A stretch of DNA of 63,341 nucleotides, filler included, from Octopus bimaculoides (Eukaryota): assembly GCF_001194135.2 (NCBI RefSeq). It is 5 parts of 5 records of this genome, joined end to end, with 100 filler letters (N's around TTAATTAATTAA, not from the genome) between each part and the next. Parts side by side here need not be neighbours in the genome. Positions count along the whole stretch, not along the records: positions 31,402 to 40,449 come from NC_069002.1; 4 more parts are not named here. One strand, written 5' to 3'. The notes under the pieces were generated by a model. The model made no database searches, was not told the DNA's origin, and saw only the letters and a program-made list of their open reading frames with translations. Position numbers and translations under genes: made by a program. Of this stretch, positions 31,402 through 39,385 are shown one piece after another. Within the stretch, counting starts at the first letter, position 1. Every line of letters begins with the position of its first letter.

Positions 31402-31844
31402 AATTAAAATAATAGTTTTAAAGTATTCTTGGAAAATAAGATAAAATTTCAAAAAAAAAAATCTTTGCATGTATGAGACATTTTTAAATATATTTAAATG
31501 TTATGTGGCTATCTTTGAGTTCTATTTGCTGACAAACGTGGGTGGGAAGCTCTCGTTACAAACAAAAAGGAACAAGAAAAAAATTGAGTTTTAAGAATTT
31601 TTTTTTTTTTTAATGAAAACAGAGATAACAATTTCCTGCATCATTTGATTAGCTATGTGAGTAATTACTGTTAATAATTAGCGTGTTTCAGCAACCCAAC
31701 TTGAAGGTCTTGGTGTCTCAACATGTTTCTTAGGAAAGTCTTCGATTGTTAAACTGACTTTGTATCTTTACTTTTTTAACTTTTTACCTTTCACTTGTTT
31801 CACTCATTAGACTGTGGCCATGCTGGGGCACTGCCTTCAAAAGA

Positions 31845-32275
31845 GAGAGAGAGAGGTAGAAGAGAGAGAGGTAGAAGTAGACAGAGAAATGTAAAGAGAG
31901 AGCGGTAGGAGAGAAGAGGGAGAGAGAAGTAGAGGGAGAGAGAAGTAGAGGGAGAGAGAAGTAGAGGAAGAGAGAAGTAGAGGGAGAGAGAAGTAGAGGG
32001 AGAGAGAAGTAGAGGAAGAGAGAAAGGTAGAGGGAGAGAAAGGTAGAGGGAGAGAAAGAGGATGAGTAAAGAGAGAAAGGTAAAGAGGAGGTAGAGGGAG
32101 AAAGACAGGTAAAGGGAGAAAGAGAAGTAGAAGTAGAGGAAGAGAGTGGGTAGTGAGAGGAATGGGAGAGAGATAGGTAGATGGGGACTATCAGGAAGGT
32201 ATAGACAGAGAGAGAGAGAGGAAAGAGATAGAGAAAGAAAGAGAGAGGAAAGAGATAGAGAAAGAGAGAGAGGTA
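31845..32275 (+). repeat. Polypurine (GA-rich) tract with 16-bp tandem unit agagggagagagaagt
   Basis: Directly visible. Confidence 0.85.
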
Positions 32276-32631
32276 CCACAAAAACAGCATCCATAACTTT
32301 ATCTTCGCCATTAATGACACAAACATGTTGCACGCTGCCTCGTTAGGTAATTTGCTTCAGCCATAAAACGAGACTGCAGCTTCTACAGGGAAATAAATAA
32401 ATCCAGGAGAGATGAAGGCAAAGAACATTCTCCCTGCAGTGGGGATCTTAACTGGTTAGGGAACCCTGCTGAACCACTGCCAATTTTCTGTTATCTAAGC
32501 ACAAAGCGAACAGAATGAGATGCAGCCATTCACAACAGCGGCTAACAAGCAGCAATTAGGACATCAGGAATTCTCAAATCAGCCAGCATGTCAAATATCT
32601 TCACCACACAGAAACCATCTCGTATTATTAT

Positions 32632-32970
32632 GTGGAGGCACAATGGCCCAGTGGTTAGGGCAGTGGACTCGCGGTCATAGGATTGCGGTTTCGATTCCCA
32701 GACCGGGCATTGTGAGTGTTTATGAGCGAAAACACGTAAAGGCTCCACGAGGCTCTGGCAGGGGATGGTGGCGAACCCTACTGTATTCTTTTACCACAAC
32801 TTTCACTCACTCTTTCTTCCTGTTTCTGTTGTGCCTGTATTTCAAAGGGCTAGCCTTGTCACACACTGTGTCACGCTGAATATACCCGAGAACTACATTA
32901 AGGGTACACATGTCTGTAGAGTGCTCAACCCCTTGCACGTTAATTTCACGAGCAGGCTGTTCCGTTGATT
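32632..32970 (+). mobile_element. SINE family C, near full length
   Basis: tRNA-like head ggaggcacaatggcccagtggttaggg...ttcgattcccagacc. Body collinear with 13350-13685. Confidence 0.85.
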
Positions 32971-33292
32971 AGAGAAGAATGGCCTTGACATTGGAATTGT
33001 AGATGCAGAGTTTTGATTTGAGGGAGATGTCTTTGGAGTATGCAATACATATATATATATATATATACATACAATTAAACCTTGGGAGAGGCATTATGCC
33101 GGTAATAAACACACGCACTGGTTCAGTCCTTTATTAATTTATATAGTTTTTTGTTAAATTATTTCATTGCACTCTTGCAATCTCTTCAGTAACTTGTCTC
33201 TCCACTNNNNNNNNNNNNNNNNNNNNNNNNNNNNNNNNNNNNNNNNNNNNNNNNNNNNNNNNNNNNNNNNNNNNNNNNNNNNNNNNNNNNNN

Positions 33293-33331
<39 letters not shown>

Positions 33332-34378
33332 CATATATAATACACACAATTGTCAAGGACTGCCCAAAGTGCTGACATGTCATTGTCAAGGGAATGGACC
33401 TGATGAAAAGTAACAGATGTCAAGAAACAGATCAGACATTGAAGCTGCAAAGATTGATTTGCACTTACTCATCCCCTGTCAACTTTTCCCCATGATAAAC
33501 ATCCCTGGCTCTTCTACACCACCCTTGGCCCGAACAGCCATCTCAGGCACTGGCACCCTTCAAACCCATCAGGATGAAGAGGCTCAACCATTCACCACAG
33601 ATTAACTGCTCAGATACAAGTTCACTTCACACCACTACTGTTAATATTACATGTATTATGCAAAAACACTCTGCATGCTGTGATAGTCAATAAAACAGAA
33701 ACTGAAATTTCAAATTTCATTCTTTCTGTGTAACCTGGCACCAAATGATACATGGACTTGTGCTGGTCTGTAGCTCAATGATTAGGGACCCTTGCCATAA
33801 AGCATTTTGTCTGACATTCCAACAACTCTGCCAATCCACCGTCAAATGGTAATTTCAATATTTCTTTGACTACCCGATATACATCCTATAAAACAATTTC
33901 ACTAAATGAAGCATCTCGACGATCGTAATCATTTGTTTGTCTCCTTCCACACATCACATGCAACTAAGTCAATATTAGCTCTCTCTCTCTCTCTCTCTCT
34001 CTTTCTTGCTGTCACACCTGATTATCTAGCATGGTTACATGCCCGATAAAGCTTTTAGAAATTTTATTTTACAGATTGGTAAATACATTTCCATCGCAGA
34101 ACTCAAAGGAACTTTGCTTCCCCACTTCACTCCTTAGAGACATTGACAATAGCTGCCATAAAGCACCAGAACATTTGCTTTGATGTTTCCCCAAATTAGC
34201 AGTAAATTCTTCTTCTGCAATAATGGTATATCTTTGTCAAGTAATGTTTTGCATATTCCTCACTTAGCGCCTCATTACACTGGTTCATGCCTGCTATTTA
34301 TCAGATAATCCTCACATCAATAACCAAAACGTTATTATTATTTTAACATTGATATTATAATTATAATCATCATCATCA

Positions 34379-34430
<52 letters not shown>

Positions 34431-34534
34431 TACTACTACTACTACTACTACTATTACTTTTAAAGGCAGTGAGCTGGCCAAATCATTGCAAAACAGGAAA
34501 AAAATGCCTTTGCAATAATTATCCTGGATTGTAA

Positions 34535-34743
34535 GGTAGTGAGCTGGCAGAATGGTTAGCACACCTGGCAAAATGTGTAGCGACATTTCATCCATCTTTA
34601 TGTCATGGGTTCAAATTCCATCAAGATCAACTTTGCCATTTTTTTTAATCCTTTCAGAGCCCGTAAAATAAGTACCAGTGAAACACTGAGGTTGATGTAA
34701 CCAGCTAGCCATGACCCAACAAATTTCAGGCCTTGTAGAAAGG
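34535..34743 (+). mobile_element. SINE family A, CpG-decayed, with ATT runs on both sides
   Basis: ggtagtgagctggcagaatggttagcacacctggcaaaatg... with CG dinucleotides mostly replaced by TG/CA. Confidence 0.8.
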
Positions 34744-34959
34744 ATTATTATTATTATTATTATTAAATCAAAATTAAAAGAAGAGTGCCATTTGTTATCT
34801 AGTGAACAATATTTCGACATCTCACGTGCCTTCAACTGGTTCAAAAAATAAATTATTATTACATAGCAGACTCAGCAAATTCATTGCAAGGAAGGAATAT
34901 TAGGTGTTTAAAATGATGAGGTGATTAATATAAATAATAAATGATAACTATTCCTTCCA

Positions 34960-35220
34960 ACCACAGGCACAAGGCATGCAATTTTTCAGTGGGAGGGCAC
35001 TAGTTGTTTTACACCAACCCCAATATTTAACTGGTACTTATTTTATTGACCCCAAAAAGGATGAAACGCAAAGTTGATCTCGGTGGAATATCTGAACTCA
35101 GAACATAAAGATGGATGGCTGTTGAGGCTATAATAGAAAACACTTGCCCAAGGTGCCATGCAGCAGGACTGAACCTGGAATCACGTAGTTGGGAAGCAAA
35201 CTTTTTATCATACAGCCATG
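34960..35220 (-). mobile_element. SINE A fragment joined to a SINE B 5' fragment
   Basis: actggtacttattttattgaccccaaaaggatgaaa...gaactcagaac, then aagacacttgcccaaggtgccatgcagc-like sequence. Confidence 0.65.
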
Positions 35221-36259
35221 ATGGAATATCATAATGATTATTATTACTATTATCAATGATTATTATCATTATCAGGATTGTTATTGGGATTATCATGGTC
35301 ACGGTGCCAATAAATATTTAATGAAAGACAAACAGGAAAACACAAATAAAACCGAGAGTTAAGGGACAAAAGCTTCTTCTTGTTTTCCTTTCCTTCACCC
35401 TTTTGTTTGTTTTTTTTTAAATATGATTATTTCCTTTCAAGAGAAGACATGTTGTTGCCTCTATGCTTATTATTGAACATATGTCAGACATATAAGGACC
35501 TGTCACTCTGTGTTGAATGTTGCTAAGAACTTCAGTGACAGCTAATGGGTTCTTGTCAGTAAAAATTACTGAAATTATCCGTCAAATCCACAATAGGATT
35601 AAAAAATGGTCATAGCAGCTTGAAAGAACATGTTTATTGTGTCTCATTATAAATTAATTATATTGAAAGAACAAACAAAAAACAAGAAAGAAACAATGAA
35701 AAAAAAGCTGGCCATACAGACTCCAAATCGTTTTTATATAATTGAATAAAGAAATTAAACACAAAAAAAATCTCTGTGTACAGTTTTTATAAAGCGAAAT
35801 AAATTGACAAATAAAAGTAAAAATATTATGCAATGCGAGTTAATGAGTGAAATTATTTATTAAAAATGATATTAATTTATTTGCATATTGTTAACTTTTA
35901 ATATATCATATTAAAAAAAATAATTAATTTTTTTCCCCCGTTGTGTGCACAATAATCTAGATTAATTTTGCAGATGTGTACTTTATACAAATAATAAAAA
36001 TTTTTGGCAGTAATATATATACTGTTTTAAAATTACAAACAATATCTCATCGTTAGTGTATTCATTATTTTACATAATTATACAAAGAATCATCAGTTAT
36101 TTGCTATAAACATGCATATATAATGTTTATATATATGTATATGTGTATATGTATGTATGAATATATATTTACGTGTATGTCTATGTGTACACACACATAT
36201 GTATGTATATATGTATCTGCATATCTATTTATCTATCTATTTATCAATCTCTCTCTTTC

Positions 36260-36323
<64 letters not shown>

Positions 36324-36613
36324 AATAATATATACACACATATACATATATTAATAGTTATCGTCAAGGTAACATATCCAGTACTGTTGCTGTAGTCTCC
36401 TTTAGAGAGATTTAGAAATATTAATATATATATGGCAAAAAAAAATGAAATAACTGAAATGAATACATAAATACATCAAACATTTGATATCCAAACAAAT
36501 TGCAGGAAAATAATTTGCCCCTGGGATACCTGCTAAACATCATTTATATAGAATTTTACAGTTATTTCAATTCATAAAATTAATTGTTTAATTGTTGACG
36601 AATCATAACTCAC

Positions 36614-36678
36614 CCTCCATTAGCATGACGAGCCCACCATTTCTCCCTTGAATCTCCATTCAGACCATCTACCTCGGG
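36614..36678 (-). CDS. unc-13: Next internal coding exon (65 nt) of the unc-13 gene
   Basis: Acceptor (t)n-acag|CCC and donor GG|gtgagt. Phase-0 start matches the previous exon. Encodes PEVDGLNGDSREKWWARHANG(G), equivalent to Munc13-1 [19 protein letters not shown], which directly follows the CaM helix. Confidence 0.75.
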
Positions 36679-37639
36679 CTGTAAAAAAAAAAAACAAAGA
36701 ATTAATAATTGTAATTTAAAAAGGAAAATGATTATAATTATTTAACTATTTTAATAAGCTTTCTCAGTGTGATTACACTGTGTAAAACAATTTTTGTCCT
36801 CGGGTAGCAACTGTTATTTCTTATTTGCTTACCCCTAACAATTATGAAAAATGGCAAATATTTCCTTCAAACTTTGAATTTGTTACATTTATTCAAACCC
36901 CAAAGTAAACAATCACGTCATTCAAAGTCTTGAAGCTATGAGACAATGCAAGCTTAATTCAAAACAATGTGTCTGTGTCTGTTTTGGCAAGGTTTTTACA
37001 GCTGGATGCGCTTTCAAATGCCAGCCACCCAAGAAAGGGAACTGAATGCTTTTTATGTAGCATCAGCACAATCAAGGTCAGTTTTGGCATGGTTCTTACA
37101 GCTGGATGCCCTTCCACATGCCAACCACTTCACAGTATGGACTGGATGCCCAAATATTTCACCTTATTTTATGTTCAAACTGGATATCATCATTGTTTAA
37201 TGTCCACCTTCCAATGCTGGCATGGGTTAGAGGGTTTGACAGGAGCTGGCCAGGTAGAAGACTACACCAGACTTCTGTGTCTGTTTTGGCATAGTTTTTT
37301 TGGCTGGATGCCCTTCCTAACACCAACCACCCCACAGAAAGGACTGAGTGCTTTTTACGTGGCACCAGCACAGGTGAGGTCAGTTTTGGTATGGTTTTTT
37401 TAACTGTATGCCTTTCCAAATGCCAGCACAGGTGTGGTCAGTTTTGGCATGGTTTTTTTATGCATTTGGATGCCCTTCCTAACACCAATCTCCCTACCTC
37501 CACCCAGAATGGGCCGAGTGCTTTATATGTGGCATCTTATGCAAGTAAATGACAGAAAAAAAGGGATAAAGAAGGATTAAAATAAATAATTAATAAAAAA
37601 GAAGCAATAAAACCCCCAAAACACAATACAAATACTTAC
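36679..37639 (-). other. 961-nt GT-AG intron between the two unc-13 exons
   Basis: Canonical gtaagt donor and poly-T/acag acceptor. The interior is mostly repeat-derived. Confidence 0.75.
36968..37535 (+). repeat. Array of about six degenerate copies of an interspersed motif (gttttggcatggttttt..gctggatgcccttcc..atgcca.cca)
   Basis: The motif recurs at about 36990, 37080, 37285, 37380 and 37440, and again at 38555-38765. ctggatgcccttcct resembles RTE-type retroposon 3' ends (recalled). Confidence 0.75.
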
Positions 37640-37832
37640 GTCTCCTAGCTGACTGCACACTTTTTGGATTGCATCGATCCAACGATTGCGAGCTGGTGAA
37701 GGCAGTTCTGTGCGTTTTTCTGTTTCTTTCTCTTCATAAGGTAAATCAGTTGGAGGAGGAGCAGCAGCATCACTGTAGTCTTGTGTACTCTGTCGGCTGA
37801 CATCTGCTGAAGAAATTCGGCTATTCACAGGA
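37640..37832 (-). CDS. unc-13: Internal coding exon (193 nt) of an unc-13/Munc13 family gene, containing the calmodulin-binding helix
   Basis: Acceptor ...cttacttttgcag|T and donor GAC|gtaagt. One base plus 64 open codons: PVNSRISSADVSRQSTQDYSDAAAPPPTDLPYEEKETEKRTELPSPARNRWIDAIQKVCSQLGD. The C-terminal ARNRWIDAIQKVCSQL matches the Munc13 1-5-8 CaM motif (Munc13-1 [16 protein letters not shown], recalled). It splices in frame to the next exon. Confidence 0.8.
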
Positions 37833-38288
37833 CTGCAAAAGTAAGAAGGCGAAAATTAAAAAGAGACATCGTAATACAAGACGGGACATTTTGCGGCCTT
37901 ATGTTTCGGAAGCAGTCATGGGCCAAACAGCAAACCGTGGGGCATCCCAAACTGCATCTTTGTGTCTTTTACTTGTTTCAGTCATTCAGCTGCAGCTATG
38001 CTGGGGCACCGCCTTGATGCCTAACAAATATTGATTTCAAATTTTGGCACAAGGTCAGCAATTTCAGGGGGTGGGGTGGGGGTGGGGGGACAAACAAATT
38101 TTGAAGAAAATGAGCCAGAACCAGAATTGATCACGAAATAGAAGGCACAGGGACCAGTTATTCCTGTGTGCACATGTAAAAGTAATGCAAAATTTCTTCT
38201 GATTTATCATCATCTTCATTGTTATTATTATCATTATTATTTTTCATTATTATTATCATTATCGTATTTTCCATTATCATTATTATTA

Positions 38289-38500
38289 GGGTGGTGAGGT
38301 GGCAGAATCGTTAGCACACCAGGCAAAATGCTTAGTGGCATTTCATCTGTCTTTACATCTTGAGTTCAAATTCTACCATGGTCAACTTTGCCTTTCATCC
38401 TTTTGGGGTCAATAAAATAAGTACCAGTTGACTGGAGTCAATGTAATTGACTGGTTCCCATCCCCTAAAATTTCAAGTCTTGAGCCTATAGTTGAAAGGG
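38289..38500 (+). mobile_element. SINE family A, full length, almost completely CpG-decayed
   Basis: Aligns end to end with the copies at 42844, 48100 and 55107. Differences are dominated by CG to TG/CA. Confidence 0.9.
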
Positions 38501-38554
38501 CTACAATTATCATTATCATTACTATCATTATCATTACTATTGTTATTATGATTC

Positions 38555-38765
38555 AAAGTCAGTTTTCCATGCTGGCATGGGTTAAATGGTTTCGTTGGAG
38601 CTAGCAAGCCAGGGAGCTGCACCAGGTCCCAACTGTCTGTCTTGGTATGGCTTCTATGACTGGACGTCCTTCCTAAACACCAACCACTTTACAGAGTGTA
38701 CTGGGTGCTTTATACATGGCACCAGTACAGGTGTTTTTAACATGGCACCAGCACATTTGTCAAAG
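38555..38765 (+). repeat. Single copy of the RTE-like gctggatgcccttcc repeat family
   Basis: ttttccatgctggcatgggtt...actggacgtccttcctaaacaccaaccactttacagagtgtactgggtgcttt matches 37200-37370. Confidence 0.7.
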
Positions 38766-39214
38766 TAAGGACATAAAAAAAAAACATTATTTCCCACCCC
38801 CCAGGGACTGTGATCCCTTGCGACGCCACTTGCCTTAGGTTAAACCATGTCAGTCTCAGTATCAACCAGCTACATCTCTTTATTGTTACCAACACAACAA
38901 AATATTCTCAGTTGTCAAATATCATTCTTATCTTTGGCAAATCTGTGATTTCTTTGTATTTTTTTTTTTTGCTTTTTATAATTAATTTCCCTTTTTTAAT
39001 TACATGTCATCTACTAAAAAACTCGTTGAAACCACCTTATCTTGGTCATTAAACTTGCACAGCCAATAAATTATGCACATTTCATTGCTTGTCAGATGTC
39101 CCAAAGCCTTCGCTCATTTTAATCATATTTTTGTTTTCTTAAAGAAAAAAACAAAGAAAAAATAATTTCATATTCATATTTTCCCTGGGAGCTTTGGTTC
39201 TATATTTTTTTTAT

Positions 39215-39385
39215 GGGCACAGGTATGATTGTGTAGTTAAGAAGTTTGTTTCCCAACCATGTGGTCGTAAGTTCAATCCCACTAAGCTCCACTGTAGGCT
39301 AGTGTCTTCTACTGTAGTCCCAGGCCAACCAATGCCTTGTGAGTGAATTTGATAGATGGAAACTGTGGAAGCCTATCGTACATAT
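39215..39385 (+). mobile_element. SINE family B 5' half, CpG-decayed
   Basis: cccaaccatgtgg..gttcaatccc...gtgtcttctactgtag...gccttgtgagtgaatttgatagatggaaactg. Confidence 0.7.

Follow-up and report, generated by a model that had tools for sequence, protein, structure and literature searches.

Two internal unc-13/Munc13 exons with a predicted calmodulin-site region in Octopus bimaculoides

The prototypic bilaterian unc13 carries a calmodulin (CaM)-binding amphipathic helix N-terminal to C1, and the Munc13-type motif has been recorded in Drosophila and in gastropods including Aplysia (PMC9282427). In C. elegans UNC-13L, the CaM site lies within the unstructured N-terminal region (PMC11991699). 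The Munc13 motif consists of anchors at positions 1, 5 and 8 on a helix that binds the CaM C-lobe, with Glu at position 14, and of a Trp at position 26 that binds the CaM N-lobe, so that the complex is extended and modular. Between helix and Trp, the 2KDU complex has a hairpin and not a continuous helix, and the spacing of the anchors is not by itself enough to reproduce the binding mode of Munc13 (PMC3794949). In Munc13-1 (Unc13a) and ubMunc13-2, as in the octopus, the site follows C2A and a disordered linker and precedes the DSMP(D/E)(I/L) segment and C1. The long isoforms of molluscs (Aplysia Ac-unc13-A/B, PMC9282427; Biomphalaria 'protein unc-13 A', P0032) likewise share the C2A-linker-CaM order with the octopus.

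In this study, a stretch of 63,341 nucleotides of O. bimaculoides DNA, filler included (hereafter the window), was analyzed, focusing on the 9-kb piece from NC_069002.1 at positions 31,402 to 40,449. Two consecutive internal coding exons of a single long C2A-containing unc-13/Munc13 gene, whose product acts in synaptic-vesicle priming, were identified on the minus strand of this piece, and we regard the gene and exon identity as almost certain.

Exon structure, splicing and the existing gene model

The earlier note on this DNA described two minus-strand exons with canonical splice sites and matching phase, and the sequence reads exactly so. The features, all on the minus strand, are as follows.

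37640-37832, minus strand: unc-13 exon 1, 193 nt (1 base and 64 codons), ending in phase 0
37833-37834, minus strand: exon 1 acceptor AG, after ...cttacttttgcAG, with a pyrimidine-rich tract
37634-37639, minus strand: exon 1 donor GTAAGT, at a position kept in all genomic fragments
36679-37639, minus strand: intron between exon 1 and exon 2, 961 nt
36679-36680, minus strand: exon 2 acceptor AG, preceded by a long T-tract
36614-36678, minus strand: unc-13 exon 2, 65 nt, from phase 0 to phase 2
36608-36613, minus strand: exon 2 donor GTGAGT, overlapping an in-frame TGA at 36612-36610

Exon 1 opens at 37832 with the last base of a split Ser codon (AG/T), and the 64 complete codons after it read PVNSRISSADVSRQSTQDYSDAAAPPPTDLPYEEKETEKRTELPSPARNRWIDAIQKVCSQLGD; the exon 1 product, (S)PVNSRISSADVSRQSTQDY..ELPSPARNRWIDAIQKVCSQLGD, starts with PVNSRISS after the split codon. 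Exon 2 comprises 21 codons plus GG and reads PEVDGLNGDSREKWWARHANG(G). The junction is in phase 0 on both sides, so that the two exons are compatible. The same note held that exon 2 is invisible as an ORF and that the exons are hidden among repeats; exon 2 is indeed absent from the ORF list, and several copies of one interspersed repeat lie inside the intron.

At least five partial copies of one SINE-like interspersed repeat occur in the intron (about 36972-37497) and upstream of exon 1 (about 38564-38733). A search of the piece for tRNA or Rfam features found none, and the repeat copies were likewise without match. An assembly gap of 86 N at 33207-33292 has TA-rich microsatellite on both flanks, and at 31784-32333, about 36120-36400 and about 34400-34600 there are a CT/GA-rich low-complexity block, (TA/TATG)n microsatellites and AT-rich simple repeats. 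The AT-rich simple repeats of the piece give rise to long spurious ORFs.

Boundaries, splicing and purifying selection of the exons are shown, the spliced transcript being that of a related species. L001, a genomic contig from another cephalopod, is similar to the window from the exon 1 acceptor to the exon 1 donor and no further. Ungapped blocks of this contig and exon 1 differ by 15 synonymous and 0 non-synonymous changes, and identity to the intron flanking exon 1 is 33/100, which equals background. A spliced transcript contig of a related cephalopod (L009, from the Logan assembly of run SRR8281684, with the product P0029) maps to the window in two blocks only, 37834-37641 and 36671-36614. 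Its bases 1647 and 1648 correspond to window positions 37640 and 36678, i.e. exon 1 is joined directly to exon 2, and the bases that follow its exon 1 part agree with exon 2 at 53/65 positions versus 15/65 for the intron. Spliced reads across 37640/36678 had been named earlier as a check on the two-exon reading, and the junction is thus present, in a related species rather than in O. bimaculoides. Read from the base-level alignment, L009 differs from exon 2 by 10 synonymous and 2 conservative changes. It departs from the window at the 36614 donor, beyond which the match falls to 29/100, and continues into ...IDSMPEIKPRRK... with the codons GG/A CCA CCA; the join at the exon 2 donor reads GG/ACCACCAGAACAT.. 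(PPEHNTFY..).

A direct protein search with the joined 86-residue octopus peptide matched only one UniProt model, A0A0L8G322_OCTBM (P0001), and one Logan fragment. An exhaustive HMMER search with P0001 and a profile search recovered at least 25 short ORF fragments of other genomes that cover exon 1 alone, all of which read into the intron at one position, after ..QLx(E/D). Because these fragments share both the exon and its boundary, exon 1 and its donor position are widely conserved. No full-length protein with exon 1 was found by the exhaustive HMMER search with P0001 or by the profile search of 5.8 billion proteins; since only fragments were present there, the full-length mollusc models in that collection are evidently without this exon.

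When P0029 and Munc13 probes were used in tblastn searches of the 9-kb piece, no other unc-13 exon was detected, including those of the C1-C2B-MUN-C2C core. P0029 matched just these two exons, in line with the earlier statement that the stretch has neither a DSMPDI exon nor an upstream phase-2 exon. Therefore, more than 2.6 kb separate exon 1 from the preceding exon (..SPVDSRVSSLNVSRQSTQDY) upstream, and the DSMPEI exon is either over 5.2 kb downstream or hidden in the 86-N gap. In Elysia and in three ENA contigs (L002-L005), the introns are too long for neighboring exons to fall within 10 kb of the exon 1 homologue: neither a C1, C2B, MUN or C2A exon nor a recognisable exon 2 turned up in these flanks.

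A0A0L8G322 is an O. bimaculoides protein of 112 aa that is annotated as 'uncharacterized' and carries no unc-13 annotation. It is 100% identical to the window over both exons and has the same exon 1/exon 2 junction. The frame through the exon 2 donor reads gga-ggg-TGA, and the model stops there. Taken at face value, this gene model and the in-frame TGA at 36612-36610 would make exon 2 a terminal exon and the product a short stand-alone protein of 112 aa ending at the TGA that overlaps GTGAGT. However, in the cephalopod transcript GG/ is spliced to PPEHNTFYTSIDSMPEIK.. without loss of frame, and two further sequences described below (L007 and P0030) likewise continue in frame past the exon 2 homologue. 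The first exon of the model, MLIHFNNLSNFLLSSCSNDEADDYN (MLIHF..DDYN), is absent from the piece and conflicts with the transcript, whose preceding exon ends ..SLNVSRQSTQDY. A terminal exon 2 is thus highly improbable in our view. Since L009 splices at the exon 2 donor and continues, this donor is used, and A0A0L8G322 is an internal unc-13 fragment that is mis-bounded at both ends: unlike the transcript, it begins with an incorrect, unsupported 5' exon and ends at a spurious stop that lies in the exon 2 donor. An occasional intron-retaining isoform may exist at this donor.

Assignment to the unc-13/Munc13 family

The unc-13 identity of the region just before DSMPDI/C1, as proposed in the earlier note, was borne out by a profile match to 2KDU_B, by C2A-bearing transcripts and by named unc-13 proteins. 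The profile (A2) was built solely from exon 1 homologues in other genomes, without Munc13 input. Among 177,635 distinct PDB sequences it gave a single match, to 2KDU_B (E 0.006, over 20 residues), so that the sole PDB match of the exon family is an experimentally defined Munc13 segment. This chain, the sequence of which was verified, is the Munc13-1 CaM-binding peptide ('Protein unc-13 homolog A'), and the consensus segment of A2 aligned to it was SpArvRWidAfnkVcaqLne. Taken by itself, the match is suggestive only.

The C2A-bearing transcripts place the region in its gene. L007, an intron-free contig recovered in a scan of metagenome contigs, contains a 506-aa ORF, the first 151 residues of which match only the Munc13-1 C2A structures 2CJS and 2CJT (E 2.8e-59 for 2CJS_A; Pfam C2). 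A single HSP that spans the exon junction aligns residues 386-467 of this ORF with the octopus peptide (E 2e-19), and RPPQHNTFYTSIDSMPEIKPRRKSIPLVSDL, which includes DSMPEIK, comes after the octopus-like region. A search with the L007 ORF returned P0029 as well as P0030, P0032 and a Nucella C2A fragment, all described below. P0029 shares 88% identity with the octopus peptide (E 3e-49), and at its N-terminus lies a Munc13-type C2A that matches only 2CJS_A and 2CJT_A ('UNC-13 HOMOLOG A', E 1.2e-52). A Munc13-type C2A is therefore found at the N-terminus of the same transcript in both L009/P0029 and L007, and lies outside the window itself. In the ORFs of L007 and L009 the region is followed by ...TSIDSMPEIKPRRKSIP.VSDL, with DSMPEIK directly after the exon 2 homologue. 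A JGI protein annotated as 'protein unc-13' (P0030, Pfam PF00168 and PF00130) has C2, the region, DSMPEIK and then C1. Hence P0030 places the region between C2 and C1, and L007 and L009 place it after C2A and before the DSMP(D/E)(I/L)..VSDL segment. The region is thus part of an unc-13 transcript in the related species, with C2A on one side and the DSMPEI/C1 region on the other.

Other molluscan loci agree with this placement. The Biomphalaria protein (P0032, 'protein unc-13 A, partial') ends C-terminally with the exon 1 homologue, and the Elysia gene model with an exon 1 homologue has a C2-domain gene upstream on the same strand. In Nucella, the C2A fragment (tag ACOMHN_001171) and the exon fragment (ACOMHN_001174) are three tags apart, and the contig listed for each has the same length, which fits the gene order. 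A Munc13-1 N-terminal probe matched only this motif, in three loci; the Munc13-1 probes served solely as queries, and the conclusions are drawn from PDB, Pfam and database sequences.

Past ..IP(L/F)VSDL, both L007 (1573-1668) and L009 (about 1800-1908) read into a GT-initial sequence with a stop soon after, at the place where P0030 continues ..VSDLSLAAKR. The two contigs probably end in an unspliced intron, and the intron that follows the DSMPEI exon may thus be long or slow to be removed. One candidate from the scan of metagenome contigs, a bacterial contig with 52.6% GC and an MFS transporter ORF (L008, 3518-3583), was rejected as a false positive with a chance ARWIEAFNRI match.

We also considered whether the exons belong to a different gene, in which the helix would be a generic amphipathic helix or the C-terminal helix of a PH domain that merely resembles Munc13. 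The core WIDAIQKV resembles what we take to be the PH-domain terminal helix consensus (..eeWikAIqk..). The octopus peptide alone did not reach 2KDU in the PDB and gave only chance-level matches, of which the best was 2g3w (E 0.019); as a relative of the octopus peptide, 2g3w (XAC2396, 'WWxxHAN') looks like chance and was discarded. Against this, two transcripts place the helix in one ORF with a Munc13 C2A, and named unc-13 proteins contain the helix region. Ahead of the helix, exon 1 encodes over 40 residues of low-complexity Ser/Pro/acidic sequence, and no PH beta-sandwich was found immediately upstream of the helix (Pfam, E <= 10). A best match to a non-Unc13 protein, e.g. a PH-domain helix, had been set by the earlier note as the outcome that would overturn the assignment; it did not occur, as the octopus peptide matched 0 Pfam families at E <= 10. 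A PH-domain or other non-Unc13 helix is refuted by the C2A-bearing L007 and P0029, and we give an origin in another gene practically no credence.

The predicted calmodulin site and the duplicated Ser-rich motif

Within the two unc-13 exons, the features relevant to the predicted CaM site and the Ser-rich motif are as follows.

37775-37831, minus strand: N-terminal Ser-rich motif of exon 1, PVNSRISSADVSRQSTQDY, with invariant S, Q, S and T columns in the exon family
37640-37693, minus strand: last 18 codons of exon 1, ARNRWIDAIQKVCSQLGD, a predicted amphipathic helix homologous to the Munc13-1 CaM-binding helix
37681-37679, minus strand: helix anchor W1
37669-37667, minus strand: helix anchor I5
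37660-37658, minus strand: helix anchor V8
37642-37640, minus strand: D at helix position 14, an acidic residue
36639-36634, minus strand: WW doublet of exon 2, motif positions 28/29, aligned with Trp-26 of Munc13-1

The octopus peptide spanning the predicted CaM site is ARNRWIDAIQKVCSQLGDPEVDGLNGDSREKWWARHANGG. The hydrophobic anchors 1, 5 and 8 of the amphipathic helix are all found in the octopus, and in the exon-family rows displayed W1 is invariant, position 5 is F, I or Y and position 8 is V or I. Like the octopus, Munc13-1 has W1, a hydrophobic residue at 5, V8, an acidic residue at 14 and a downstream Trp followed by a Gly-rich stretch. Position 5 is I in the octopus versus F in Munc13-1 (I also in P0047, V in P0056), and position 14, acidic and not hydrophobic in both, is D in the octopus versus E in Munc13-1. 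The octopus has no Trp at position 26; it has a Trp doublet at 28/29, compared with the single Trp of Munc13-1, and this Trp aligns with Trp-26 after a linker that is 2-3 residues longer. Elsewhere, the second Trp stands at 28 in one vertebrate-type sequence (P0047) and at 30 and 33 in other invertebrate unc-13. The net charge of the octopus helix is +1 over 18 residues, versus +3 in Munc13-1 and +3/+4 in vertebrate-type sequences. Because W1, I5 and V8 are present, the 1-5-8 module is conserved, and the second module is present and differently spaced.

By homology, the region is the orthologue of the Ca2+/calmodulin-binding module of Munc13-1/ubMunc13-2. As the Trp residues occupy 28/29 and not 26, and as 2KDU was not reached by the octopus peptide alone, we infer CaM binding from homology and consider it probable that octopus unc-13 binds Ca2+/CaM here. 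The exons encode the end of the disordered linker after C2A, comprising the Ser-rich SRQSTQDY motif, an acidic spacer, the amphipathic helix ARNRWIDAIQKVCSQLGD and a short Gly/Trp segment (..SREKWWARHANGG). On the Munc13-1 model, W1, I5 and V8 of the helix would engage the C-lobe of Ca2+/CaM and the downstream Trp the N-lobe, and the predicted module would make vesicle-priming activity and short-term plasticity responsive to residual presynaptic Ca2+.

The same residues may be read differently. These could be unc-13 exons in which the cephalopod/lophotrochozoan helix is not a bipartite CaM sensor of the Munc13-1 type and serves another CaM mode or another interaction, e.g. an intramolecular C1-C2B contact; the CaM domain has been speculated to interact with C1-C2B (PMC11991699). 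The position of the Trp (28/29 in the octopus, 30 and 33 in other invertebrates, versus 26), the lower net charge of the helix (+1 versus +3/+4) and the finding that spacing alone is insufficient for the Munc13 binding mode (PMC3794949) are in favor of this. However, W1, hydrophobicity at 5, V or I at 8 and acidity at 14 are features shared across phyla, and the Trp falls in the same alignment column, with Trp 28 also in the vertebrate-type P0047. Moreover, a hairpin lies between helix and Trp in the 2KDU complex (PMC3794949), and the Munc13-type motif occurs in gastropods and Drosophila (PMC9282427). We hold this alternative to be unlikely, though it merits serious consideration, and the bipartite Munc13-type module is retained as the preferred reading.

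The motif SPxxSRxSSxxVSRQSTQDY is present in two tandem copies, of which one closes the preceding exon and the other opens exon 1 (37775-37831, minus strand). In P0029 the tandem copies occupy residues 275-314 (..SPVDSRVSSLNVSRQSTQDY/SPVNSRISSADVSRQSTQDY..). The tandem motif is also found in L007, P0028, P0030 and P0032 and is conserved in the mollusc-type sequences recovered. Its RQST fits the R-x-x-S/T kinase consensus. A modified cephalopod/lophotrochozoan CaM module (WW at 28/29, a weakly basic helix, Ile5) combined with phospho-regulation via the duplicated motif might give priming a Ca2+-sensing unlike that of mammalian Munc13-1; we offer this as a speculative and rather doubtful proposal.

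Tandem copies of parts of the exon were observed in other species. In a contig of another invertebrate (L006, about 1058-1360), a 45-nt unit in about six tandem copies lies immediately upstream of the real exon and repeats the acceptor region and the first codons of the exon 1 homologue (..SPLNSRSNHVYLCVY..). A 6404-nt ENA contig of a further species (P0015 and P0027) has several tandem copies of the exon 3' end and the intron start (PHVRWLEAYDKVLNQLSE-VSI..).

Comparison with molluscan unc-13 and implications

Among the molluscan sequences, Biomphalaria P0032 resembles the octopus in having the same exon and 3' boundary (..RVCAELSE/) and the duplicated SRQST motif, but the two share only 38% identity over exon 1 and their acidic spacers differ. 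The helix core is AIQK in cephalopods versus AFN(K/R) in gastropods. The octopus exons are an orthologous instance of a known motif, and their description is ordinary gene annotation; what it adds is limited to the correction of one fragmentary gene model and the observation that the second Trp is spaced differently. A literature search for the motif string returned nothing.

The O. bimaculoides model of 112 aa, so far 'uncharacterized', may now be given a new label, that of an internal unc-13 fragment. The CaM-site exon is represented in the protein database mostly by anonymous single-exon ORFs, and the exon-family profile can be used to find it in fragmented invertebrate assemblies. The Munc13 CaM module is conserved in cephalopods together with its exon boundary after ..QLxE, as could be expected from published results on gastropods and Drosophila (PMC9282427), and cephalopods are a group of interest for synaptic plasticity.
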